From assembly GCF_036365525.1 (NCBI RefSeq), contig NC_090404.1:13420550-13484549 (forward strand): a stretch of 64,000 nucleotides of DNA. Reading direction: 5' to 3'. Origin of the DNA: Heterodontus francisci (taxonomy: Eukaryota). The position numbers and the translations under genes are program-made. The notes under the pieces are model-generated. The model was not told where the DNA came from and made no database searches. It saw only the letters and a list, made by a program, of their open reading frames with translations. Below are positions 2,681 to 64,000 of the stretch, one piece after another. The first letter of the stretch is position 1. Each line of letters opens with the position of its first letter.

Positions 2681-2983
2681 TCAGCGGGTTTACAGCTCCG
2701 TTAAGTGCTGGTTGGTGCCTTTATCGGCAGGGTTAGTTCGATGCCAGGTCCACGGAGAACAAACACTGTCAGGTTTCAAATCAATCAGTTGTGTTGTTGT
2801 TTTTACCCTCATTCAAATCAACAGAGAAAACGGTCTGGGAAATCTTGAGACTTAGCTCCGTGCCCTGAGTTATACCGCCTCGGTGCATATCTTGGAGCTC
2901 GACGGTAGATAAGGAGAGTGTTATAAAACTGCCAGCGTTCCGTTAACTGCACAGGCTACACACGGTCAGGAGCAGCCCCGGTA

Positions 2984-3022
2984 GGTTTTTGTACGGTCCC
3001 TGCTGATCTTTGCTGCACCGTG
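2984..3022 (-). other. 23-bp-spacer RSS of V2
   Basis: CACGGTG, exactly 23 bp, perfect ACAAAAACC. Confidence 0.95.
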
Positions 3023-3459
3023 TCTCCATTGCACAGAAATAGGTGGCGGTGTCTGTCACTCGAGTGTCGCGAACAGTCAGAGAGCTGCGCTTCTCTGCTG
3101 TAATGAACCGAGCCGTGATCCTGTTCTGACCACTGGTACCGCTCGCCAGGTGCTGCACAGGTCGGTCCCAGACTTGTCTGTACCATTGTAGGATCCGTCC
3201 TCCAACTGTGGTGGAACAGTTCAAGGATGCAGTGTCTCCCTCGGTAACAAGCACTGACTCCGGAGACTGCGATAGCTCTTCATTGCCAGTGGCATCTGAG
3301 AAAAATATGGAGATATAATATCATATAATTCATATAATATAAAACAATGCAATATAACACACCGAAATAAAATACAACAGAACAGAAGTGACCACACTCA
3401 CACGGAGGGTGGAGTAAGAAATCCAGGGAGATAATAACTAAAGTGAAGCTCAGCTTCAT
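3023..3459 (-). CDS. TRAV: intact TCR alpha/delta-type V gene segment (V2); leader exon 3402-3459, V exon 3023-3295
   Basis: Leader MKLSFTLVIISLDFLLHPP with GTGAGT donor and phase-1 intron; EELSQSPESVLVTEGDTASLNC..LQWYRQ..SSLTVRDTRVTDTATYFCAME; no stops; canonical RSS. Alpha versus delta cannot be settled from this window. Confidence 0.88.
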
Positions 3460-9524: not shown

Positions 9525-9845
9525 GTGCTTTACCTGTCCTGGGAGTGTCTGATGGGGCAGTGTAGAGGGAGCTTTACTCTGTATTTAACCTGTGCTGTAC
9601 CTGCCTGGGGCTGCTTGTGGGGACAGTGTAGAGGGAGCTTTACTCTGTATTTAACCTGTGCTGTACCTGCCTGGGGCTGCTTGTGGGGACAGTGTAGAGG
9701 GAGCTTTACTCTGTATTTAACCTGTGCTGTACCTGCCTGGGGCTGCTTGTGGGGACAGTGCAGAGGGAGCTTTACTCTGTATCTAATTCATACTCTACCT
9801 TCTCTGAGTGTGTGTGATTGGGCAGTGTACAGGCAGCTTTGCTCT
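9525..9845 (+). repeat. 66-bp tandem repeat, ~4.5 copies
   Basis: Unit ggacagtgtagagggagctttactctgtatttaacctgtgctgtacctgcctggggctgcttgtgg; related copies at 25780-25970. Confidence 0.9.
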
Positions 9846-22969: not shown

Positions 22970-25230
22970 TACAGATTGTGAACAGTTGTTCAACACTGAT
23001 CCTTGTGGTGCCCCACTAGTAATAGCCTGTCATCCTAATAATAACCCGTTTATTCCTACTCCCTGTTTTCTTTCTGTCTGTAACCAATTCTCAATCCATA
23101 CCAGTATATTACGCCTAATCCCATGTGCTCTAATTTTGTTTACTTAGCTCCTGTGTGGGACCTCAGCTTTCTGAAAATTCAAATACACGACATCAATTGG
23201 TTCTCCTTTATCTATGGTACAAGTAACATCCTCAAAAAATTCCAAAAGGTTTGTCAAACATGATTTCCCTTTCATAAATCCGTGTTGACTCTGCCCAATC
23301 GCATAATTATTTTCTCAGTGTCTAGTTATCACATCCTTTTTAATAGATTCTAACATTTCTCGCCAACTGATTGGAGGAAAATGTAACTGGTCTGATTAGT
23401 AAGTTTGCGGACGACACAAAGGCTGGTGGAGTTGCGGATAGTGATGAGGATTGTCGGAGGATACAGCAGGATATAGATCGGTTGGAGACTTGGGCAGAGA
23501 AATGGCAGATGGAGTTTAATCCATACAAATGTGAGGTAATGCATTTTGGAAGATCTAATGCAGGTGGGAAGTATACAGTAAATGGCAGAACCCTTAGGAG
23601 TATTGACAGGCAGAGAGATCTGGGCGTACAGGTCCACAGGTCACTGAAAGTGGCAACGCAGGTGGATAAGGTAGTCAAGAAGGCATACAGCATGCTTGCC
23701 TTCATCGGTCGGGGCATAGAGTATAAAAATTGGCAAGTCATGCTGCAGCTGTACAGAACTTTAGTTAGGCCACACTTAGAATATTGCGTGCAATTCTGGT
23801 TGCCACACTACCAGAAGGACGTGGAGGCTTTGGAGAGGGTACAGAAGAGGTTTACCAGGATGTTGCCTGGTCTGGAGGGCATTAGCTATGAGGAGAGGTT
23901 GGAAAAACTCGGATTGTTTTCACTGGAACGACGGAGGTGGCGACATGATAGAGGTTTACAAAGTTATGAGCGGCATGGACAGAGTGGATAGTCAGAAGCT
24001 TTTTCCCAGGGTGGAAGAGTCAGTTACTAGGGGACATAGGTTTAAGGTGAGAGGGGCAAAGTTTAGAGGGGATGTGCGAGGCAAGTTTTTTACACAGAGG
24101 GTGGTGAGTGCCTGGAACTTGCTGCCAGGGGAGGTGGTGGAAGCAGGTACGATAGCGACGTTTAAGAGGCATCTTGACAAATGCAAGAATAGGATGGGAA
24201 TAGAGGGATATGGTCCCCGGAAGTGCAGAAGGTTTTAGTTTAGGCAGGCATCAAGATCGGCGCAGACTTGGAGGGCCGAATGGCCTGTTCCTGTGCTGTA
24301 CTGTTCTTTGCTCTTTGTTCTTTGATTCAAACTAATAGATCTGTAGTTCCCAGTTTGCTTTTTCCCTCCTTTCTTAAATAGTGGGGTTACACTTTACTGG
24401 CCATCCTTTTTTGTCTCTCTGTCAAAATAATATTTCGCTATTTTTCTATTTGTCCTGTTTTGAGAATTGCATTGTACATATTGTTCACTTGAGGCTGCCA
24501 TGCACACATGAGCTAATAAAGGGAGCTGAAATCTCACATTTCGCACATTATATTCCATCTGCAAATTTTTTGCGCATTTAACCTATCTATACCCCTTTCA
24601 GACATTTGTGTCCTCTTCACAACTTGCTTTCCTACCCATCTTTGCACGCCCGTAAATTTGGCTACAATACAGTTGCCCCTTCATCCAAGTCATTAATATA
24701 GATCGTAAATAGTTGAGGCCTCAGCACTGCTCTCGGTGGCACTCCACTAGTTACAGTGTAGCAACCTGAAAGTGCTGCATTTATCCCGTCTTTAGGTTTC
24801 CTGTTAGTTAGCCAACCCTCTATTCACGCTAGTATATCACCCCGACAACTATGAGCTCTTATCTTGTGTAGTAACCTTTTATCTGGCACCTTATCCAATG
24901 CCTTTTGGAAATCCAAATACATTACATCCCCTTTATCCACCCTATTTGTTACATCCTCAAAGAACTCTGTTAAATTTGTCAAACACGATTTCCTTTTCAT
25001 AAAACCATGTTGACTTTGCCTGAGTGCATTATGATTTACTAAATGCCCTGCTATTCCTTCCTTAATACTGCATTCTAGCATTTTCCCAATGAGAGATATT
25101 GGGCCAACTGGCCTATAGTTTCCTGCTGTCTGTCATCCCCTCCTATTTGCGGTTTTTCAATCCCCTAGGAGCTTCCAGAATCTAGGGCATCTTGGGAAAT
25201 TACAACCAATGTATCCACTATCTCTTCAGG
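22970..25230. mobile_element. CR1 fragments (minus strand) with a nested plus-strand CR1 3' piece at 23370-24325
   Basis: KFADDTK..WQMEFN..RPHLEYCVQFW; tail ttctttgctctttgttctttg; flanking QHGFMKRKSCLTNL on the minus strand. Confidence 0.85.
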
Positions 25231-25779: not shown

Positions 25780-25970
25780 TGTGCTTTATTTAACCTGTGC
25801 TGTACCTGCCCTGGTAGTATTTGATGGGACAGTGTAGAAGGAGATTTACTCTGTATCTAACCCGGGTTGTACCTGCCCTGGGAGTGTTTGATGGGATTGT
25901 GAAGAGGGAGATTTACTCTGTATCTAACCCGGGCTGTACCTGCCCTGGAAACGTTTGATGGGACAATGTT
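25780..25970 (+). repeat. ~66-bp tandem repeat, ~3 copies
   Basis: ctgtacctgccctggg..tttgatgggacagtgtag..tttactctgtatctaacc. Confidence 0.85.
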
Positions 25971-29465: not shown

Positions 29466-29857
29466 TCATTGACATGAATTGACAGTGTCCAACAGTGCAA
29501 GGGAAATGTTCACAAAACTCGGTTTACCGCTGGATTTATTCACTGTTCTGTTGATGATTTTCAAGAGGATCGCTTCATGTCCCACCACACAGGAGTAAGA
29601 AGCGCCGTTGGCCCACTCCTCCGCTGCAATGGATAACTGGCTGTAGATGAAGTAGGAGCTGTTGTCGTTCTCCGCCATCACCTCGGTGTTCTTGTAGTTG
29701 CCGGGATTCACCGACTTGTCATTGACGGTCCACTTGACGAAGATCTCTCGGGGGGAGAAACCTCTCACTAAGCAGGTGAGGGAGAGGAACCTCTGAGCGG
29801 AGACTTCTTCTGCCGGGGGCAGGAGGACAGATACGGACGGTTCCCGCGGATTTGGAA
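29466..29857 (-). CDS. IGHM: IgM Cmu4 exon plus secretory tailpiece
   Basis: [62 protein letters not shown]; internal G|GTAAA donor at 29528 for TM splicing; penultimate Cys. Confidence 0.96.
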
Positions 29858-30357
29858 CTGCAGAAAAAATAAAATAAGTGTCAATAAACAGGAGAATTCC
29901 AGAGACAATGAAACCGGTGGCGAGATGTGAAAGGAATGTGCTTTGCACCGAATTTTAAAGGTTTTCCTTTTCCCCTCTGGGCCCTGTCCTGTTTTCCAGC
30001 CCGGAGCAGAGGCGGATACAATCCTTCTCTCTGAGAACTTAAAGGATTAGACTGGAAAATTACATAGAATTTACAGCACAGGAACAGGCCTTTCGGCTCA
30101 ACTAGTCTGTGCTGGTGTTTCTGCTGCACACGAACCTCCTCCCACCTTATTTCATCTCCTTCTATTCCTTCCCCCCCTCATCTACTTATCTAGCTTCCCC
30201 TTAATGCATCACCTCTGGTTCCAGATGGTTTCGTTAGTGGAATTACAATTAACTTATCGGAGTAATCCATTTGAGCGCTTAATAGGACGAATTGTCCCTT
30301 TCACAAACACAAGAGATAATCATAACCTCTCACTTGTGCTTCTATCTCTCCGCTCAC

Positions 30358-30666
30358 CTTCTTCCTTGTGGATGGAATCTCTGAGTGGAGTCGGCAGATC
30401 CTGATGGCTCACCACGCAGTAGAACTCATTCCCTCTCAGCCAGGATTGTGTCGAGATGTTTACGGTGCTGATCACGCTGTCGGGATCCTCTCCGGGTTGG
30501 ACGGCAGTCTCTGATTTCAAAGGCTTCATTTCTTGGGTCCAGGGCACGTTGACTCCATAAGGAGCATTAGACACGACGCAGGTTAAAGTCACCGTCGCCT
30601 CCAGTAAGGCCTGTTCTATTGATGGTGGCAGTAGTTTAATTACTGGATTATTGCACAGGGAAAGAT
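30358..30666 (-). CDS. IGHM: IgM Cmu3 exon
   Basis: [51 protein letters not shown]; 309 nt, phase 1/1, canonical splice sites. Confidence 0.95.
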
Positions 30667-31209
30667 CTGTGAAATAGAAATGAAAGTCAATAAAACCTCC
30701 ATTTTCGAAATCAGGACATCAATATTCAACCTTCACTCTCACGAGAAGAATAAATCACCTTCAAGATGTCAACTTTTCACAGTTGCTTAAGCACCATCGT
30801 TTATTGGAAGGGCAAGGATTTGAAATGAGCTTCTGGGCGATCCCTGACTCATTTCCGTCCAATCCCTCCCTCATTTCCGCCTGTCTATCGATCCTTCCGC
30901 TGGATCACATCTCCACTCAATTTAAAGCCTCTGCCCCCAGGGTCACGAGCTATACATGTAATTCACTCTGGCTCAAAATGAAATTCCGAATTTTAGGCGC
31001 AACAGGAAACCAAGTTAATTTGCTGCTACCTTGTTACGATATTTGGAGACAGGAAAATGAGAATGAGTTTGTCAGAGGAGAGGTAACAGGTCGGGAAAAT
31101 GCTGTTGCAAAGGATCTTTTTGCGGTGGAGAGTAGGTTGCAATACCGGTACATTGCTAACATAATCCACACGTGTCAGTCTGAAGTCAGAAGGAGATCTG
31201 ACCAGAGGC

Positions 31210-33520
31210 GGTAAAAGGAACATAGGGAAACGAGGAGGCCATTCAGCCCCTCGAGCCAGTTCCGCCATTGAATTCCGTCCACCCATATGTAACCCTTAAT
31301 AAATCTATCAGTCTCAACAGTAAAATATTCAGTTGGTGCCAAGGCTCAACAGCGAGTTGGGGGAGGGAATTCCAGATTTATGCTACCCCCTGCGTGAATG
31401 GAGTAATAGAGCACAGAAACAGGCCCGTCGGCCCATCGTGTCCGTGCCGGCCATCAAGCACCTAACGATTCTAATCCCATATTCCTGCACTTGGCCTGTA
31501 GCCTTGTATGCTATGGCGTTTCAAGTGCTTATCTAAATACTTCTTAAATGTTGTGAGGGTTCCTGCCTCTACCACCTCTTCAGGCAGTACGTTTCAGATT
31601 CCAACCACCCTCTGGGTGAATTTTTCCCCTTAAATCCCCTCTAAACCTCCTGCCCCTTACCTTAAATCTATGCCCCCCTGGTTATTGACCCTTCCATGAA
31701 GGGAAAACGTTTCTTCCTATCTGACCTATCAATGCCACTCATAATTTTGTATACCTCAATCATGTCCCCCCTCAGCCTTCTCTGCTCTAAAAGAAAACAA
31801 CCCTAGACTTTTCAGTCTCTCTTCATAGCTGAAATGCTCCAGCTCAGGCAACACCCTGGTGAATCTCCTCTGCACCCTCTCCAGTGCAATCACATTGTTC
31901 CTATATTGTGGTGCCCAGAACTATACAAAGTATTCCAGCTGTGGCCTAACTAGCGTTTTATACAGCTGCATCATAACCTCCCTGCTCTTATATTCGAGTC
32001 ATAGAGAAATGCAGCACTAAAACAGGCCCGCTGGCCCACTGAGTCCGTGCCAACCATCAATCACCCATTCATGCTGATCCTACATTAGTCATACTTTTCC
32101 ATTTTACGCCTCCACCGTCCCTCAATTCTCCTACCACCTACCTACACTAGGGACAATTGTTACAATGGCCGATTTATCTATCAACCTGCAAGTCTTTGGC
32201 ATGTGGGAGAAAACCCAAACTGTCACAGGGAGAACTTGCAAACCCAGAACTGAAGCTGTGAGGCTGTGGTGCGAGCCACTGCGCCACTCTGCCGCCCACG
32301 CCAACCCTTGGCTGAGAAAGGCAAGTATCCCATATGCTTTCCTAACCACCTTATCTACCTGTGCTGCTACCTTCAGTGATCGATGGACAAGTACACCAAG
32401 GTCCCTCTGACCTTCTGTACCTCCTAGGGTCCTACCATCCATTGTATATCCCCTTGCCTTGTTAGCCCTCCCAAAATGCATCACCTCACACTTCTCAGGA
32501 TTAAATTCCATTTGCCACTGCTCTGCCCGACTTACCAGCCCATCTATATCGTCCTGTAATCTAAGGCTTTCCTCATCACTATTTACGACACCACCAATTT
32601 TCGTGTCATCTGCAAACTTACTTATCATACCTCCTATATTCGCGTCTAAATCATTAACGTACACTACAAACAGCAAGGGTACCAGCACCGATCCCTGCGG
32701 TACACCACTGGTCACAGGCTTCCACTCACAAAAACAACCCTCGACCATCTCCCGATGCCTCCTGCCACTAAGCCAATTTTGGATCCAATTTGCCCAATTG
32801 CCCTGGATCCCATGGGCTCTTACCTTCTTAACCAATCTCCCATGCGGAACCTTATCAAAAGCCTTACTGAAGTCCATATAGACTACATCAACTGTTTTAC
32901 CCTCATCTACACATCCAGTCACCACCTCGAAAAATTCAATCAAGTTAGTTAGACACGATCTCTCCATGACAAAGCCATGCTGGCTATCTCTGATTAATCC
33001 CTGCCTCTCCAAGTGGAGATTAATCTTGTCTCTCAGAATGTTTTCCAATAGTTTCCCAACCACTGATGTTAGACTGACCGGCCTGTAATTACCTGGTTTA
33101 TCCCTGCTACCCTTCTTGAATAATGGCACCATATTCGCTGTCCTCAGTTCTCTGGCACCTCTCCTGTGGCCAGAGAGGATTTGAAAATTTGTGTCAGAGA
33201 CCCTGCTATCTCCTCCCTTCCCACACATAACAGCCTCACATAATAGCCCCTTCCTGATATCATCCCTGAATGACCTTGGTCTGATCTGAAGGTTATGCCC
33301 CTTTGTTCTGGAGTCCCCAACCAGAGGAAATATTTTTCTCCACTGACTCCATGAATTCGAGTAAACATCTTAAGCACCTCAATTATATCACCCTTTAATC
33401 TTCGACACTGAAAGGGATACCAGTTTGGTCTGTGAAACCTGTCCTCATAATTTAACCCATTCAGCCCCGCTACCATTCTAGTGAATTTGTGTTGCACTAG
33501 TCCCAAGACTTCCTGAGCTC
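31210..33520 (-). mobile_element. CR1 fragments in the Cmu2-Cmu3 intron
   Basis: ORF 32131-33228 is a CR1 RT core (NYRPVSLTS, QHGF, DFSKAFD, GVPQGS, FADD). Confidence 0.9.
32010..32300 (-). mobile_element. HE1/V-SINE-like tRNA-derived SINE
   Basis: Minus strand gtggcgcagtgg..cacagcctcacagc..ttgcaagttctccctgtgac..ccaaagacttgcaggttgatag. Confidence 0.7.
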
Positions 33521-33901
33521 CGGACTCCAGCATTGGACACAGTTTTCTAAGTAGGGAAGATGCTCTTTCTGACACTTGATTCCGAGGTTGTGACCAGTAA
33601 AGGGTTCCAGACACCTATTGCCGCTCCAAATAGGATCAGACAACTCAGGATAAACCTGAGATCAAGGCCACCTCACTCACTATATGACATCAAAGCAGCG
33701 AGAATCATTCTTTGGTGATGTGATGACATGTTGAACCGTGGGCAATCCTAATTCAGCACTCACAGCGGAAAGAAGCATAAAAACTACATGATGGGAAATT
33801 AGAAATTATTCAGTGCTTTGTACTAGTTCCAACAAATTCCTGTCGTTGGTTATCATCGGAGCATAGAATGGGCCAGAGCTTCCTCCGTTTGTGTCTCTTA
33901 C

Positions 33902-34219
33902 CCTGAGATCCGGTGATGTTTCGGCTTTGGGTGACTCCTTGATGGGAGACCTGGCAGGTATAGACCGTGTTGGTGAACCATTCCCTAGCGGGGACTGTCA
34001 GCCGACTGGTCGCCGAGAAGGTCCCGTTCACTCCACAGGTGGGAGATGTGACGAAGCCCGATTCCATGTGTTGTCCATCCTTCAACCAACTCACGGTTAT
34101 TGACTCTGGATGGAAATCGATGATTGAACACAAGACAGTTGCAAATCTGCTGCTTGTGATTTCTTCACTGGAACTCTGGGTGAGGATAACAGTTGGATGG
34201 ACCTTGTCACCTTTACAAT
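33902..34219 (-). CDS. IGHM: IgM Cmu2 exon
   Basis: [54 protein letters not shown]; 318 nt, canonical splice sites. Confidence 0.96.
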
Positions 34220-34430
34220 CTTCAAGAAAAATCATGTTAGACATTTTTCGAAGAAATTATTAATTAATGCAAACTGCTCTTATATTTTAACAGGTTCTTT
34301 GCTGTAAGCAGACTCTAACTGGGCTTTCCAGGGATCAGAACTGTGCACAGTACTCTAAATGTGTTATAGCCAAAGCTTGACACAAGACAATTATAGTTTT
34401 TCTGTTTTTCATAGTTTCCACATCACTAAC

Positions 34431-34727
34431 CTGGAATTTCCTTGATCCAGACTGACTCTCCGCGTCGAACGTCGCAGTAGATTTTGCTGTTTCCCACCTC
34501 TGACTCGGTGATGGTTAACTGGCTGCTCCGGATGTAGGTTCCCTTCTTGTTCAGCACTGACGGGTAACTCTTCAATCCAGTGGTGATCGGCTGTTTATCT
34601 TTCTTCCAGGAAACGCTGGTGATTTGGGGGATGTAGTCCATCGCCAAACAGCCGTAGGCCACGGAGCCGTCTGTGTTGGGTTGTTCACAGGAGCAAAGAC
34701 CGTAAAGGGTTGGCGGAGATGGTGTCA
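34431..34727 (-). CDS. IGHM: IgM Cmu1 exon
   Basis: [49 protein letters not shown]; 297 nt, canonical splice sites. Confidence 0.96.
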
Positions 34728-35309
34728 CTGGAAAAGAATGGCAGATTGAACAGGTTAGACTCTGTGATTCATGTTTATTAAGTAACCAGACAACTCGGAA
34801 TTTGACTCCTGATTTCACCTTCATCCGCATTTGAGCTTCTACCACTCCTATCATTTGCTGATCATTACCTGTCGGTCCCCTGGTCAGGAACACACCTCTC
34901 TTTCAGAACCTGTCACATTACAAAAGTAAGAGTCTTTTCATGTCATCTCAATAAACTATCTTCCATTGGATTACACTGGGATCCCACTATTCCGGCAAGT
35001 ATTTATTTCTAAACCAACAGCACTTTGTCAAAAATAAAACACTTGGCATTTATTAATTCCAGTTTTTGGAAATTTGCTCTCTGCAAATAGACTGCTGAGT
35101 TCCCTCAGCCCTCCACCCCTCCACCCCTCCACCCCTCTCTCCCCACCCACCCTGCCCCACCTCCCAAATAGCGACTACTCTTAAAAAGTGCCATCGCAAT
35201 GAGTGCTTTTAAATGAGCTTAAAATTCGAAACTTGACTACTAGGCAAAGTAATTCCATTATTTTCCCACAAAAACAACAACAAACCCCAGCATGTTCATG
35301 ATCCAGGAT

Positions 35310-41941: not shown

Positions 41942-41989
41942 CTGCAGTCACCGTCACCATGGTCCCTTGCCCCCAGTTGCCAAGATAGT
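41942..41989 (-). CDS. IGHJ: IgH J segment
   Basis: YLGNWGQGTMVTVTA then GTAAG donor. Confidence 0.95.
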
Positions 41990-42028
41990 CACGGTGTTAT
42001 ATTCCCTGGGCTGGGTCACACAATAACC
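41990..42028 (-). other. JH 23-RSS
   Basis: Read on the plus strand: CACGGTG, 23 bp, ACAATAACC. Confidence 0.92.
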
Positions 42029-42366
42029 GGCTCTGCACAGAACAGAGAGAAATCCTTCATTATTTTAAATATCCACAGCCCAGAGGCAAAATAAAATGAT
42101 GATGGTTTTTCGGAAAATTATAACTGTGTTCATGATTCTTTTCACTCTTTATAAATTTCCCTGATGTTTTATATTTCACACAGTAACATGTCAGCAATTA
42201 TTGAAATCACCAACTGATGAATGAATAATTAATCAGTTTATCCATAATTAACCGTGCTAGGAGGACAGTGCTGGACACAAATAGTGTTTCACTGTATATA
42301 CAGTTGGATTGTAAAGCGAGCACTGACGCAGACTCATCAATTAGCGCTGAGTGACTTTTTGTATTG

Positions 42367-45300
42367 TTGGATACTGTTGAGGGAGATGGTTCACCAGGGG
42401 AAGGCAGCAAGAGCCAGGTTCATGGCACCGTGGCTGGCTCTGCTGTTCAGAAGGGCGGCAAAAAGAGTGGAAGGGCTCCAGTCATAGGGGATTCGATTGT
42501 AAGGGGAGTAGATAGGCGGTTCTGTGGTCGAAAACGAGACTCCCGAATGGTATGTTGCCTCCCAGGTGCACGGGTCAGGGATGTCTCAGATCGGCTGCAG
42601 AACATTCTGAAGGGGGAGGGTGAACAGCCAGTTGTTGTTGTGCACATAGGCACCAATGATATAGGTAAAAAACGGGATGAGGTCCTACAAGCAGAATTTG
42701 GGGAGTTAGGAGCCTAGGTTAAAAAGTAGGACCTCAGAGGTAGTAATCTCAGGATTGCTACCAGTGCCACGTGATAGTCAGAGTAGAAATGAAAGAATAG
42801 TCAGGATGGATGCATGGCTTGAGAGATGGTGCAGGAGGGAGGGGTTCAGATTTTTGGGACATTGGGACCAGTTCTGGGGGAGGTGGGACTATTACAAATT
42901 GGACGGTCTACACATGGGCCGGACTGGAACCAATGTCCTTGAAGGTGCTTTTGCTAACGCTGTTGGGGAGGGTTTAAACTAATGTGGCAGGGGGTTGGGA
43001 ACCAAATGAGGAGGTCAGTGGAGGTAGTAACTAAAGCCTGTAAGGAACTAGATAATGAAGTCAGCGTGACTAAGGGAAAGAGTAGGCAGGGAGCAGATGA
43101 TGAAAGCAAAGGGACTGGTGGTCTGAGGTGCATTTGTTTTAATGCAAGAAGTGTAGTAGGTAAGGCAGACGAACTTAGGGCTTGGATTAGTACCTGGGAG
43201 AATGATGTTAATGCTATTACTGAGACTTGGTTAAGGGAAGGGCATGATTGGCAACTAAATATCCCAGGATATCGATGCTTCAGGCGGGATAGAGAGGGAG
43301 GTAAAAGGGGTGGAGGAGTTGCATTACTGGTCAAAGAGGATATCACAGCTGTGCTGAAGGAAGGCACTATGGAGGACTCGAGCTGTGAGGCAATATGGGC
43401 AGAACTGAAGGGTGCGGTAACAATGTTGGGGCTGTACTACAGCCTCCCAACAGCGAGCGCGAGATAGAGGTACAAATATGTAAACAGATTATGGAAAGAT
43501 GTAGGAACAACAGGGTGGTGGTGATAGGAGATTTTAATTTTCCCAACATTGACTGGGATTCACTTAGTGTTAGAGGTCTAGATGGAGCAGAATTTGTAAG
43601 GAGCATCCAGGAGGGTTTTCTAGAGCAGTATGTAAATAGTCCAACTCGGGAAGGGGCCATACTGGACCTGGTGTTGGGGAATGAGCCCGGCCAGGTGGTT
43701 GAAGTTTCAGTAGGGGACTACTTTGGGAATAGTGATCACAATTCCGTAAGTTTTAGAATACTCATGGACAAAGATGAGAGCGGTCCTAAAGGAAGAGTGC
43801 TAAATTGGGGGAAGGCCAACTATACCAAAATTCGGCAGGAGCTGGGGAATGTAGATTGGGAGCAGCTGTTTGAAGGTAAATCCACATTTGATATGTGGGA
43901 GGCTTTTAAAGAGAGGTTGATTAGCGTGCAGGAGAGACATGTTACAGTGAAAATGAGGAATAGAAATGGCAAGATTAGGGAACCATGGATGACAGGTGAA
44001 ATTGTGAGACTAGCTAAGAGGAAAAAGGAAGCATACATAAGGTCTAGGCGGCTGAAGAAAGACGAAGCTTTGGAAGAATATCGGGAATGTAGGACCAATC
44101 TGAAATGAGGAATTAAGAGGGCTAAAAGGGGTCATGAAATATCTTTAGCAAACAGGGTTAAGGAAAATCCCAAAGCCTTTTATTCATATGTAAGGAGCAA
44201 GAGGGTAACTAGAGAAAGGATTGGCCCACTCAAGGATAAAGGAGGAAAGTTATGCGTGGAGTCAGAGAAAATGGGTGAGATTCTAAACGAGTACTTTGCA
44301 TCGATATTCACCGAGGAGAGGGACATGACGGATGTTGAGGTTAGGGACAGATGTTTGATTACTCTAGGTCAAGTCGGCATAAGGAGGGAGGAAGTGTTGG
44401 GTATTCTAAAAGGCATTAAGGTGGACAAGTCCCCAGGTCCGGATGGGATCTATCCCAGGTTACTGAGGGAAGCGAGAGAGGAAATAGCTGGGGCCTTAAC
44501 AGATATCCTTGCAGCATCCTTAAACACGGGTGAGGTCCCGGAGGACTGGAGAATTGCTAATGTTGTCCCCTTGTTTAGGAAGGGTAGCAGGGATAATCCA
44601 GGTAATTATAGACCGGTGAGCCTGACGTCAGTGGTAGGGAAGCTGCTGGAGAAGATACTGAGGGATAGGATCTATTCCCATTTGGAAGAAAATGGGCTTA
44701 TCAGTGATAGGCAACATGGTTTTGTGCAGGGAAGGTCATGTCTTACCAACTTAATAGAATTCTTTGAGGAAGTGACAAAGTTGATTGATGAGGGAAGTGC
44801 TGTAGATGTCATATACATGGACTTCAGTAAGGCGTTTGATAAGGTTCCCCATGGTAGGCTGATGGAGAAAGTGAAGTCGCATGGGATCCAGGGTGTACTA
44901 GCTAGATGGATAAAGAACTGGCTGGGCAACAGGAGACAGAGAGTAGCAGTGGAAGGGAGTTTCTCAAAATGGAGACGTGTGACCAGTGGTGTTCCACAGG
45001 AATCCGTGCTGGGACCACTGTTGTTTGTGATATACATAAATGATTTGGAGGAAAGTATAGGTGGTCTGATTAGCAAGTTTGCAGACGACACTAAGATTGG
45101 TGGAGTAGCAGATAGTGAAGGGGACTGTCAGAGAATACAGCAGAATATAGATAGATTGGAGAGTTGGGCAGAGAAATGGCAGATGGAGTTCAATCAGGGC
45201 AAATGCGAGGTGATGCATTTTGGAAGATCCAATTCAAGAGTGAACTATACAGTAAATGGAAAAGTCCTGGGGAAAATTGATGTACAGAGAGATTTGGGTG

Positions 45301-46004
45301 TTCAGGTCCATTGTTCCCTGAAGGTGGCAACGCAGGTAAATAGAGTGGTCAAGAAGGCATACGGCATGCTTTCCTTCATCGGACGGGGTATTGAGTACAA
45401 GAGTTGGCAGGTCATGTTACAGTTGTATAGGACCTTGGTTCGGCCACATTTGGAATACTGCGTGCAGTTCTAGTCGCCACATTACCAAAAGGATGTGGAT
45501 GCTTTGGAGAGGGTGCAGAGGAGGTTCGCCAGGATGTTGCCTGGTATGGAGGGCGCTAGCTATGACGAGAGGTTGAGTAGATTAGGATTATTTTCATTAG
45601 AAAGGCGGAGGTTGAGGGGGGACCTGATTGAGGTGTACAAAATCATGAGAGGTATAGACAGGGTGGATAGCAAGAAGCTTTTTCCCAGAGTGGGGGATTC
45701 AAATACTAGGGGTCACGAGTTCAAAGTGAGAGGGGAAAAGTTTAGGGGGATATGCGTGGAAAGTTCTTTACGCAGAGGGTGGTGGGTGCTTGGAACGCGT
45801 TGCCAGCGGAGGTGGTAGATACGAACACGATAGCGTCTTTTAAGATGTATCTAGACAGATACATGAATGGGCAGGAAGCAAAGAGATACAGACCCTTAGA
45901 AAATAGGCGACATGTTTCGGTAGAGGATCTGGATCGGCGCAGGCTTGGAGGGCCGAAGGGCCTGTTCCTGTGCTGTAATTTTCTTTGTTCTTTGTTCTTT
46001 GTTC
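42367..46004 (+). mobile_element. young 5'-truncated CR1 LINE (SGNH ORF1, APE, RT) between D2 and JH
   Basis: VIGDSIVRG..VVHIGTNDIG; CFNARS..ITETW; 405-aa RT ORF at 44256-45473; few disablements; (TTCTTTG)n tail; TTTGTATTG at both ends (42358-42366, 46005-46013). Confidence 0.95.
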
Positions 46005-46065
46005 TTTGTATTGACAGTAACTGCTGTGCCACCCCAGCACAGTGAGACAAACCGTGTCAAATACT
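46001..46065 (-). other. IgH D2 segment (core 46029-46037, CTGGGGTGG) with 12/12 RSSs
   Basis: 5' RSS read outward CACAGTG-12-TCAAATACT; 3' RSS CACAGCA-12-ACAAAGAAC, with the nonamer partly supplied by the CR1 tail. Confidence 0.9.
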
Positions 46066-46372: not shown

Positions 46373-46453
46373 GGTTCTTGTATGAGGAACTCGCTCTGTA
46401 CAGTACCGTGACCCACTGCTGTGTCCACAGTGACACGAACCAGCATAAATACT
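46373..46453 (-). other. IgH D1 segment (core 46411-46425, GACACAGCAGTGGGT) with 12/22 RSSs
   Basis: 5' RSS CACAGTG-12-ATAAATACT; 3' RSS CACGGTA-22-ACAAGAACC. Confidence 0.92.
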
Positions 46454-46813: not shown

Positions 46814-46852
46814 TGTTCTTGTACGGGTCCAGCCCTGGTTCCTCTCGCTGTG
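46814..46852 (-). other. VH 23-RSS
   Basis: CACAGCG, 23 bp, ACAAGAACA. Confidence 0.92.
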
Positions 46853-47329
46853 GTATCTTGCACAGTAATACATGGCGGTGTCTTCAGTCTTCAGGTCCTT
46901 CATGTCCAAAGCGAAGATGTTGTTTGAAGTGTCTTTGGACGCAGTAAATCGATCCTTAATCCCTGGGGCGTAGTTATTACTTGATGAACTGAGGTACTCA
47001 AGCAGCCACTCCAGCCCCTGCCCGGGAACCTGTCAGACCCAGTTCATCCAGTCACTGCCAAGACTGAACCCGCTGGTTTTACAGGTCAGTCTCAGGGAGG
47101 CTCCGGGTTTCCCGGTCTCTGCCTCCGGCTGAGTCAACACGATATCCGACTGGACACCTGTAAAAAATATCAAAAACCCCGAGGATTAATCCTGGTGAAA
47201 TGATTCCTGACTCTGTAACATTCCAGAGAGAGACTAACACTGAGACAGTAACAGTGAGAGACTCGAACAATAAAACTACTCACTGGATAAGAAAACCAGT
47301 AACAGACAGAGAGAAATCGCTGACCTCAT
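46853..47329 (-). pseudogene. IGHV: IgM VH segment with one nonsense codon; leader exon 47284-47329, V exon 46853-47157
   Basis: MRSAISLCLLLVFLS; [79 protein letters not shown]; TGA at 47033-47035. Confidence 0.95.
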
Positions 47330-49122: not shown

Positions 49123-49252
49123 NNNNNNNNNNNNNNNNNNNNNNNNNNNNNNNNNNNNNNNNNNNNNNNNNNNNNNNNNNNNNNNNNNNNNNNNNNNNNN
49201 NNNNNNNNNNNNNNNNNNNNNNNNNNNNNNNNNNNNNNNNNNNNNNNNNNNN
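49123..49252. other. assembly gap (130 N)
   Basis: Run of N. Confidence 1.
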
Positions 49253-58790: not shown

Positions 58791-60119
58791 ACCCCCACTG
58801 TCTTTCAGGTGATATCATGAACCAGTAATCTCTCCCCTTCCCCTTGTCTGTTGATGTGGATATTAAAGCTCCCATGGCCCCCACAATGTGTCCTGGTCAA
58901 CATTCTTCCTTTCAATCAAGGTTTGACATCCTTCTATCTGCGAAAGATGATGAACACGCAACAAACAATCCATTAAGGTGGGGTGTCTTCTCTTGGTGCA
59001 CCTTTGCTAATGGCTGTGAAGGCCAATCCCTGAAAGGCAGTTTTTTGCCACAAGTGCCGGAACCTCTTCAACCAAGATCAACAAGAATACTTTAACAGAA
59101 GTTCAGTCCCTTTGCTCTATTAAGGATGTCTCTGCGCACAAGTGGGCCACATTCATCTGGAATTAGTTGCACCTCAAATTCTGGGACCTCCTAGCGAAGT
59201 TGATGAGCTGGTAGATCAATGCAAGTTGTTTCTTGGTGTATTAATATCAGAAGCAGTAACTGATATCGACATTTTCACAATAGGAGCAATGGCCAAACAC
59301 AACCACCAGGTGTCAGTGAAAGCCCGGTTGTTTACATTACATAAAACATGCGTTGCCTCAGTTATTACTGCACTGGACCCTGCTTCTGTTTATATCACAC
59401 TAGACTCTGTCTCAGTTTATATTACACTAGACCTTGCTGTTGTTTATGTTACACCAGGCCCTGTCTCAGTTATTACTGCACTAGACCACGTGTCTGTTTA
59501 TATCACACTAGATCCTGTCTCCGTTTATATTACACTCGACCCTGTCTCTCTTTATATTAAGCTAGAGCCTGCTTTAGTCTATATTACACTAGATGCTGCC
59601 TCTGTTTTTATTACACTAGGTCATTGTCCTATTTGTATTACAGCAAGCATTGTCTTTGATCATATAAAAACAGTCCGTGCCTCAGTTATTTCTACATTGG
59701 CCCAATCTCAGGTGTGAATATATTGGACCATGTTTCTGCTTGTGTCACAATGCCCTGTCTATGTTATTATTGCACTAGACTCCGTTTCTGTTTCTATCAC
59801 CCAAAGCCTTGTTACTGCTGTAATCAACCATCTCTGTTTTACTATTACTCGGAATCCTGTCGCACCTATTGCTGCACTTGTCCATGTCTCAGCTCATAGA
59901 AATCTAGGTCCAGTATCGGTAATTACTGCATTAGGGTCTGTATCAGTTTATATTGCACAATGTCCTCTGTCAATTAAAACTACCCTGGACCTTGTCTCAG
60001 TTTTTCTTCTACTAGACCCTGTTTCACGTATGACTATACTATACCACATTACACCAGATTCTGTCTCAATTATTATGGCGGTCCACTCATTTCATACTAC
60101 ATTATATCATGTGACATTA

Positions 60120-62995: not shown

Positions 62996-64000
62996 GTATG
63001 ACTTTAAATTACACAAGACTAATACCACATGAAACCCAATCTCAGATTTTACTGCATCAGTCCCTATCACTGTTATACTGCAACAGAGCCTGTCTCTGAT
63101 TATATTACATTAGTCCCTGTCTCAGTTCTTTCAGCACGAGGTCCTAACTCAGCTGTTGCTACACAGGACGATGTCTCTGTTTATAGTAAATTTGGCAAAG
63201 TCTCTGTTTTGCTGCTCCTCACCGTGTGTCTGTTTATACTACACAAAACCCAGTCTCAATTAATGCTGGCCTAGTCAATGTCTCCGTTTATATTACACTG
63301 GACCATGTCCCTGTTATTACTCCACTGGAATATGTATCTGTTCGTATTAAACTAAGCCCTCTCTCTTCATTAATATTGTGTTTATATTACACTCGGAACA
63401 CTCTCTCTGTTTATATTACAATGGAAAATGTCTCGGTTTACATTACACTAGACCCCATCTCTGTTAATATCAATGAAGACCCGGACTCTGTTCATATTGC
63501 ACCAGACACCATCTTTGTTTATATTACATGTACCCTGTCTCTGTTTATGTTACACTTGACCACATCTCTGTTTATATTACCCTAGGCCCTGTCTCTGCTT
63601 ACAATAAACTAGACCCCATCTCTGTTTATATTACATCAGACCCTGTCTCTGTTTATATTACACCAGACCCTGTCTCTGTTGATATTACATCAGACCCTGT
63701 CTCTGTTTACATTACACCAGGCCCTGTCTCTGTTTATATTAATCCAGACCCTGTCTCTGTTTATATTACACCAGACCCTGTCTCTGTTTATATTACACCA
63801 GGCCCTGTCTCTGTTTATATTAATCCAGACCCTGTCTCTGTTTACATTACACCAGGCCCTGTCTCTGTTTATATTACACCAGGCCCTGTCTCTGTTTATA
63901 TTACACCAGACCCTGTCTCTGTTTATATTACACCAGGCCCTGTCTCTGTTTATATTAATCCAGACCCTGTCTCTGTTTACATTACACCAGGCCCTGTCTC

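Follow-up and report, generated by a model that had tools for sequence, protein, structure and literature searches.

A CR1 retrotransposon lies within the D2 recombination signal of an IgM minilocus, most likely a pseudogene, in Heterodontus francisci

Based on the analysis of a 64,000-nucleotide stretch of the Heterodontus francisci genome (NCBI RefSeq assembly GCF_036365525.1, contig NC_090404.1, positions 13,420,550 to 13,484,549 of the forward strand; hereafter the window, with coordinates counted from its first letter), we report that a long interspersed element (LINE) of the CR1 clade has inserted inside a recombination signal sequence (RSS) of an immunoglobulin M (IgM) gene cluster. The window holds one complete cartilaginous-fish IgM minilocus on its minus strand (47329-29466), with variable, diversity, joining and constant elements in the order VH-D1-D2-JH-Cmu1-4. 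The LINE, 3.64 kb long and on the plus strand (42367-46004), lies between D2 and JH, within what was the nonamer of the D2 3' RSS. The account that we consider very likely to be correct is that of an ordinary, one-off CR1 insertion in one IgM minilocus, notable for its place, in a cluster that is itself most likely a pseudogene.

Part of the evidence for this account comes from the boundaries of the element. The sequence TTTGTATTG stands directly before the LINE at 42358-42366 and again directly behind it at 46005-46013, and in-silico deletion of 42367-46013 (3647 bp) rejoins the D2 3' heptamer CACAGCA (46028-46022, minus strand) and the spacer GTTACTGTCAAT to the nonamer ACAAAAAGT, giving a regular 12-RSS whose nonamer matches the consensus ACAAAAACC at 7/9 positions and has an intact A-tract. 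Today this original nonamer (42354-42362, minus strand) is stranded 3.6 kb away from its heptamer; 12 bp from CACAGCA there now stands the nonamer-like 9-mer ACAAAGAAC (46009-46001), supplied by the tail of the LINE, and the present signal is a chimeric 12-RSS (46001-46028, minus strand) that keeps the original heptamer and spacer (46010-46021). An earlier note on this DNA had described the flanking repeats, the restored RSS, the stranded nonamer and the tail-derived 9-mer, all of which held on reconstruction. It had also put the restored D2-JH gap at ~330 bp and called it similar to the other gaps of the cluster, of which the similarity stood and the figure did not: the deletion takes the D2-JH interval from ~4.0 kb to 378 bp from heptamer to heptamer (377-378) or 392 bp from coding end to coding end, next to neighboring gaps of 427 bp (V-D1) and 373 bp (D1-D2).

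The right-hand copy of the repeat is partly ambiguous. Its TTTGT (46005-46009) is at once part of the duplication and a continuation of the periodic tail, and only its ATTG is surely duplicated, so the target-site duplication measures 4-9 bp. The 5' boundary of the element is placed independently of the repeat, at the codon beginning at 42367, where homologs of the first open reading frame (ORF1) of the LINE start to align. The site thus combines a 4-9 bp duplication, a complete tail, 5' truncation at about codon 112 of ORF1 and a canonical RSS restored on removal, as looked for in target-primed reverse transcription (TPRT). On these sequence grounds, we regard the insertion of a CR1 LINE inside the D2 3' RSS nonamer as confirmed and the reconstruction of the empty site as sound.

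Certain points weigh against the reading of an ordinary insertion into a probable pseudogene and are best considered together. The case for the empty site is built on internal evidence: the flanking duplication, a 5' boundary located independently of it, and the return of both the RSS and the normal spacing once the element is removed. Among the joints listed from the contigs (15 of 920, all of them VDJ joints of paralogs), none bridges the two junctions of the element or connects 42366 to 46014. Finally, the pseudogene call, which is taken up below, depends on a single base change (CGA to TGA) together with contig-level RNA data. The orthologous site was likewise not encountered in contigs of two other organisms, in which the LINE family is present and the flanks are not covered. 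That no read or contig among the rows listed spans either junction, and that the family is extremely abundant and so invites mis-assembly, would also suit an artifact in which the assembly collapsed a LINE copy, or joined it wrongly, into the D2-JH interval. We hold this to be most improbable, given that the exact flanking duplication, the clean 5' truncation in frame with ORF1, the complete 3' tail and the precise restoration of the RSS form the signature of a true insertion, and that the copy bears its own private substitutions relative to the family contigs.

The element is a CR1-clade LINE, as the earlier note had named it, and its assignment is made from the type of its ORF1, its endonuclease and reverse transcriptase, and the architecture of its 3' end. 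The 5'-truncated and defective copy, delimited by Pfam matches and by comparison with family copies in the window, occupies 42367-46004 on the plus strand, with 46005-46009 belonging to either tail or target. It opens with an ORF1 fragment (42367-42714) that carries an SGNH/GDSL esterase motif (GDSIVRG...HIGTNDIG). The match of this fragment to Lipase_GDSL_2 (E=1.2e-4) falls short of Pfam's cut-off; among 1.84 billion representatives searched, 653 homologs were found at E≤0.001, of which 148 reach E≤1e-10, with conservation of the GDSIVRG and HIGTNDIG blocks. The best homolog, a protein of 314 amino acids, aligns at 81% identity through its residues 112-226 with query residues 5-120, residue 5 being the codon at 42367, and the copy is truncated ~110 codons into ORF1.

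Next in order on the plus strand come an APE-type endonuclease (42982-44108; Exo_endo_phos and Exo_endo_phos_2, E down to 1e-10), which is spread over two frames with a break near 43441, and a reverse transcriptase (44256-45473; RVT_1, E=1.6e-34), for which the list of open reading frames gives in-frame stops at both bounds. Apart from the break near 43441, behind which part of the family contigs hold one extra G, the lesions of the copy comprise an ORF1 stop at 42715-42717, beyond which the ORF1 homologs extend, a second frame break near 45744, and in-frame stops at ~44106 and ~45471; judged by these, the copy is dead. It ends without poly(A), in a hairpin followed by a 7-nt microsatellite. 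The hairpin (CGGCGCAGG...GGGCC GAAG GGCCU...CCUGUGCUG; 45935-45975) appears in the centroid fold with a z-score of only -1.35, six of the CR1-type 3' ends in this window retain its block, and its stem is preserved in variant copies. The tail, (TTCTTTG) x 4.1 at 45981-46009, was called by Tandem Repeats Finder with a period of 7 and 100% matches.

This anatomy agrees with what is known of canonical vertebrate CR1 elements such as those of chicken and turtle and the elasmobranch HER1 LINE, the partner of the HE1 V-SINE (a short interspersed element, SINE). An esterase ORF1 and an ORF2 with APE endonuclease and reverse transcriptase are common to both, as are strong 5' truncation, a 3' hairpin with a short microsatellite in place of poly(A), and a short duplication with 3' target overlap; the likeness to HER1 is one of element architecture, as distinct from a base-by-base alignment with the published HER1. 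According to a 2026 survey, every canonical CR1 of vertebrates either has an esterase ORF1 or derives from an element that had one, L2 elements of chondrichthyans have no ORF1, and 22-34% of elasmobranch genomes consists of CR1-group elements (PMC13343379). The hairpin and an octamer are conserved in amniote CR1 (PMC4316615), and the difference here lies in the terminal repeat, which is ATTCTRTG in amniotes and the 7-mer TTCTTTG in this copy. A CR1 3' end of the former appearance is also found in the window: between Cmu3 and Cmu4, with its terminus at ~30068, it has the tail ATTCTATG, which resembles the amniote octamer. CR1 reverse transcriptase fragments, including an open piece of 365 amino acids, occupy much of the Cmu2-Cmu3 intron (31568-33228, minus strand), and Pfam searches of ten other long open reading frames of the window gave just one further LINE endonuclease fragment. 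The family to which the inserted copy belongs reaches great abundance in the source organism and two further organisms, with very high summed contig depth over exactly the span of the LINE. A second, older and likewise 5'-truncated copy of it lies at 23371-24324 on the plus strand, is 79.5% identical and ends in the tail TTCTTTG/CTCTTTG/TTCTTTG, with no recognizable target-site duplication.

The route by which the insertion came about can be proposed from the anatomy of the site. A germline retrotransposition of a CR1-clade LINE, a one-off and ordinary event, would have struck the A/T-rich nonamer of the D2 3' 12-RSS, where the endonuclease probably nicked the cluster-sense strand within the A-tract (ACAAA^AAGT). 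The freed ...CAAA-3' end could then have paired with the UUUG end of the (UUCUUUG)n RNA tail and primed reverse transcription, and a cut of the second strand 4-9 bp away would have produced the short duplication, with the copy truncated within ORF1. Such in-register pairing would make the junction resemble its target, as ACAAA would be kept and GAAC added from the tail, yielding ACAAAGAAC at the original 12-bp spacing. CR1/L2 target duplications peak at 3-5 bp (PMC4245944), and PMC6007223, citing Ichiyanagi and Okada 2008, describes 3' ends of CR1, L2 and RTE that overlap their targets by one to several bp through pairing between RNA and target; a duplication of 4-9 bp with a TTTGT overlap is consistent with both. 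With 4-5 nt shared by tail and target and a nick placed in an A-tract, the junction likewise resembles microhomology-primed TPRT as described for L1 at TTTT/AA and for the 3' overlaps of CR1, L2 and RTE. We see no mechanistic difference in the present case, whose sole peculiarity is that the target is a functional motif.

The same overlap explains why the nonamer looks rebuilt. Five of the nine positions of the new nonamer (TTTGT) are the overlap of tail and target and retain the five spacer-proximal bases, and only the four heptamer-distal bases were altered, from ACTT to GTTC on the plus strand. The count against the consensus is unchanged at 7/9 before and after, but a G now stands inside the A-tract, which is broken in ACAAAGAAC. 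Of the seven possible registers of the tail, the observed one gives 7/9 against ACAAAAACC and the remaining six give 4-5/9, and the observed register is the one that the TTTGT overlap fixes. The correct spacing and the resemblance to a nonamer therefore follow from an insertion primed by overlap, and any target with equal overlap would do likewise. The earlier note had treated the rebuilding as a noteworthy, healing property of the element; since the TTTGT overlap alone accounts for both the spacing and the 7/9 match, the apparent healing is a mechanical by-product of overlap-primed insertion and not evidence of signal-seeking.

It had gone on to suggest that RSS nonamers are preferred targets of this CR1 subfamily, whose tail would mend them in part and give rise to nonamer-like arrays at other places, an idea that we consider very unlikely. 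It draws some support from the T-rich strand of the canonical nonamer (GGTTTTTGT), which includes TTTGT, the 3' end of the tail, and under the overlap rule canonical nonamers would perhaps be ~8 times likelier targets per bp than average DNA (2/237 TTTGT sites versus 63/63,870 bp). Nonamers nevertheless make up less than 1% of the TTTGT overlap sites, and CR1 3' ends are frequent, with seven of them in the window, or ~1 per 9 kb. Of the seven RSS nonamers that the window contains, six belong to the IgM cluster and one stands behind a T-cell receptor (TCR)-like V segment. If insertion were uniform, these 63 bp of 63,870 would be struck by one of the seven insertions with a probability of ~0.7% per RSS-bearing window; where insertion is restricted to TTTGT, nonamers are 2/237 sites, which gives 0.84% per insertion and ~1.7% for the two (TTCTTTG)n-tailed copies. 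Over 132 windows of this genome the rough expectation is about 1-2 cases by chance, all of these figures being rough ones derived from counts in this window. With chance sufficing for the hit and overlap alone for the rebuilt nonamer, a preference for nonamers is unsupported. Two further observations also speak against it. The second family copy, whose tail at 24303-24324 had been cited as a similar, nonamer-like array, does have that tail as its end, but it sits in ordinary DNA with no heptamer 12 or 23 nt away, and 124 family contigs from another organism have nothing but A/T richness in common in their 3' flanks (agreement 0.35).

A broader proposition is that CR1 subfamilies with T-rich (TTCTTTG)n tails are measurably biased to the T-rich strand of nonamers and recurrently split and partly re-form RSSs in shark immunoglobulin and TCR miniloci, leaving chimeric signals that are competent; we judge it very unlikely as well. 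If it were true, germline LINE insertions would act as a steady cause of RSS variation and cluster turnover, one that erases itself somatically. A literature search returned no report of a LINE inside an RSS nonamer, which is a weak negative. On present evidence, the ordinary insertion proposed here does not reveal a new targeting mechanism.

We next consider the state of the cluster into which the LINE was inserted. In the VH, an in-frame TGA (47035-47033, minus strand), on which the earlier note had been silent, occupies the conserved arginine codon of the WVRQ motif in framework region 2, a change of the CGA to TGA type, and the motif reads WV*Q. The other exons, JH and Cmu1-4, are open, and the cluster thus departs from the open frames expected of a functional one at VH only. 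VH and JH are covered very deeply by an RNA-like run whose sample is also that of the probable source DNA. Dozens of its joints connect JH to VH across 10-39 diverse letters and represent rearranged VDJ transcripts from clusters that are at least 90% alike. The letters of this coverage are not those of the cluster: at position 46897, 4,018,535 of 4,019,418 of the RNA-like depth carries a non-cluster letter, and nearly all of the depth likewise differs from the cluster at 47126 in VH and at 41978 and 41980 in JH. The JH differences are private replacements, such that the cluster encodes L-G-N-W where the expressed JH is nearly all D-Y-W (41978-41980). Rearranged transcripts of this cluster itself left no sign in the RNA-like contigs, a weak negative in that contigs show presence and not absence. 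Because of the stop in VH, the private VH and JH replacements and the lack of any sign of its own rearranged transcripts, the cluster is most likely a pseudogene, as far as its letters and those of the contigs allow the call.

Several IgM pseudogene clusters are known in nurse shark (PMC2435157). Those of Groups 6-8 and G2C keep the normal VH-D1-D2-JH-Cmu layout, carry disabling changes and coexist with many functional paralogs, as is the case here; the present cluster differs from them in counting a LINE within an RSS among its lesions. With many IgM clusters in the genome, such an insertion would be nearly neutral.

Whether the chimeric RSS could still work bears on what the insertion did when it happened. 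Were it still used by RAG, D2-JH joints would delete the LINE, and the insertion would have been functionally silent at the time. We think this possible, though doubtful. The signal has a CAC heptamer, a 12-nt spacer and a 7/9 nonamer, and CACAGCA-12-ACAAAGAAC is the sole match in the window between a heptamer and a nonamer of at least 7/9 at 12-nt spacing. Its score equals that of the original nonamer and falls within the 6-8/9 of the other nonamers of the cluster, position 6 is likewise not A in the nonamers of the 5' D RSSs, and at 13-nt spacing the 9-mer CAAAGAACA has AAGAACA in common with the VH nonamer. Nonamer positions are also known to tolerate many substitutions (PMC2193808). Against continued use stand the G at nonamer position 6, which interrupts the A-tract, and the fact that no D2-JH joint or VDJ transcript with the private letters of the cluster was seen, weakly so given that contigs only were searched; the VH stop, moreover, would render any product sterile. 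The earlier note had argued that V(D)J joining deletes the LINE somatically and thereby hides it from selection in B cells. The geometry for such deletion is there and would apply only if the chimeric RSS works. The argument is otherwise largely moot, given the TGA in VH and expressed transcripts that lack the private letters, and it is unneeded because one cluster of many, already carrying a stop, would be under little selection.

Apart from the insertion, the cluster is regularly built, and all of its segments lie on the minus strand. VH with its RSS (46814-47329) consists of a leader (47329-47284), whose joint across the leader intron is present in RNA-like contigs, the intron, a V exon (47157-46853) recognized by its translation and by V homologs in sharks, and a 23-RSS (46852-46814; CACAGCG-23-ACAAGAACA). 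Homologs of VH were found in Chiloscyllium punctatum, Mustelus asterias, Scyliorhinus torazame and Heterodontus francisci, the nearest being H. francisci HV01 (86% identity) followed by a M. asterias model (84%). D1 with both of its RSSs spans 46373-46453 (coding 46425-46411, GACACAGCAGTGGGT) and has a 5' 12-RSS and a 3' RSS with a 22-nt spacer (CACGGTA...ACAAGAACC). D2 with its 5' RSS spans 46029-46065, with the coding letters CTGGGGTGG at 46037-46029 and the 5' 12-RSS AGTATTTGA-12-CACTGTG. Paralogous D2 contigs over 46029-46051, present in the DNA run and in the RNA-like run, depart from this D2 at 46035 and 46037 and contain an added AGTA behind 46034, which indicates at least one other cluster with a longer D2 and an identical 3' heptamer and spacer. 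JH with its RSS spans 41942-42028 and comprises a 23-RSS (42028-41990; GGTTATTGT-23-CACCGTG), the segment itself (41989-41942; ...LGNWGQGTMVTVTA) and a GT donor (41941-41940). The four constant exons (29466-34893) all read open exon by exon, and Cmu4, the last of them, ends in a secretory tail. The resulting RSS order, 23 / 12-22 / 12-12 / 23, is that of the nurse shark minilocus plan of a VH, two D segments, a single JH and one Cmu (PMC2435157). Self-BLAST of the V-D1-D2 side and of the JH side gave no second IgM cluster in the window.

Several further features of the window were recorded in passing. A TCR-like V segment (...WYRQ...DTATYFCAM), at ~3050, and the intact canonical 23-RSS that follows it, CACGGTG-23-ACAAAAACC, lie within ~2950-3060 on the minus strand, which places a TCR V on the strand of the IgM constant exons and ~26 kb downstream of them. 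A 66-67-bp tandem unit (GTGCTGTACCTGCC..GGGACAGTG.AGAGGGAG.TTTACTCTGTAT.TAACC) makes up two arrays, at 9525-9845 and 25787-25965, that are related to one another across 16 kb and resemble a minisatellite derived from a SINE or a tail. A 27-bp satellite (TGTTTATATTACACCAGACCCTGTCTC) forms three blocks (59357-59619, 63040-63123 and 63379-64000), the last of which has 23 copies and continues past the end of the window. A run of 130 N at 49123-49252 is a gap or a masked stretch.

Collectively, the insertion provides a clean natural case in which a retrotransposon has split a signal for V(D)J recombination, and with it a ready-made pair of substrates, ACAAAGAAC versus ACAAAAAGT, behind an identical heptamer and spacer. 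It also illustrates that the apparent repair of a motif by the tail of a LINE can follow automatically from overlap-primed insertion. For the shark IgM clusters themselves, it represents a dated lesion in their birth-and-death turnover.

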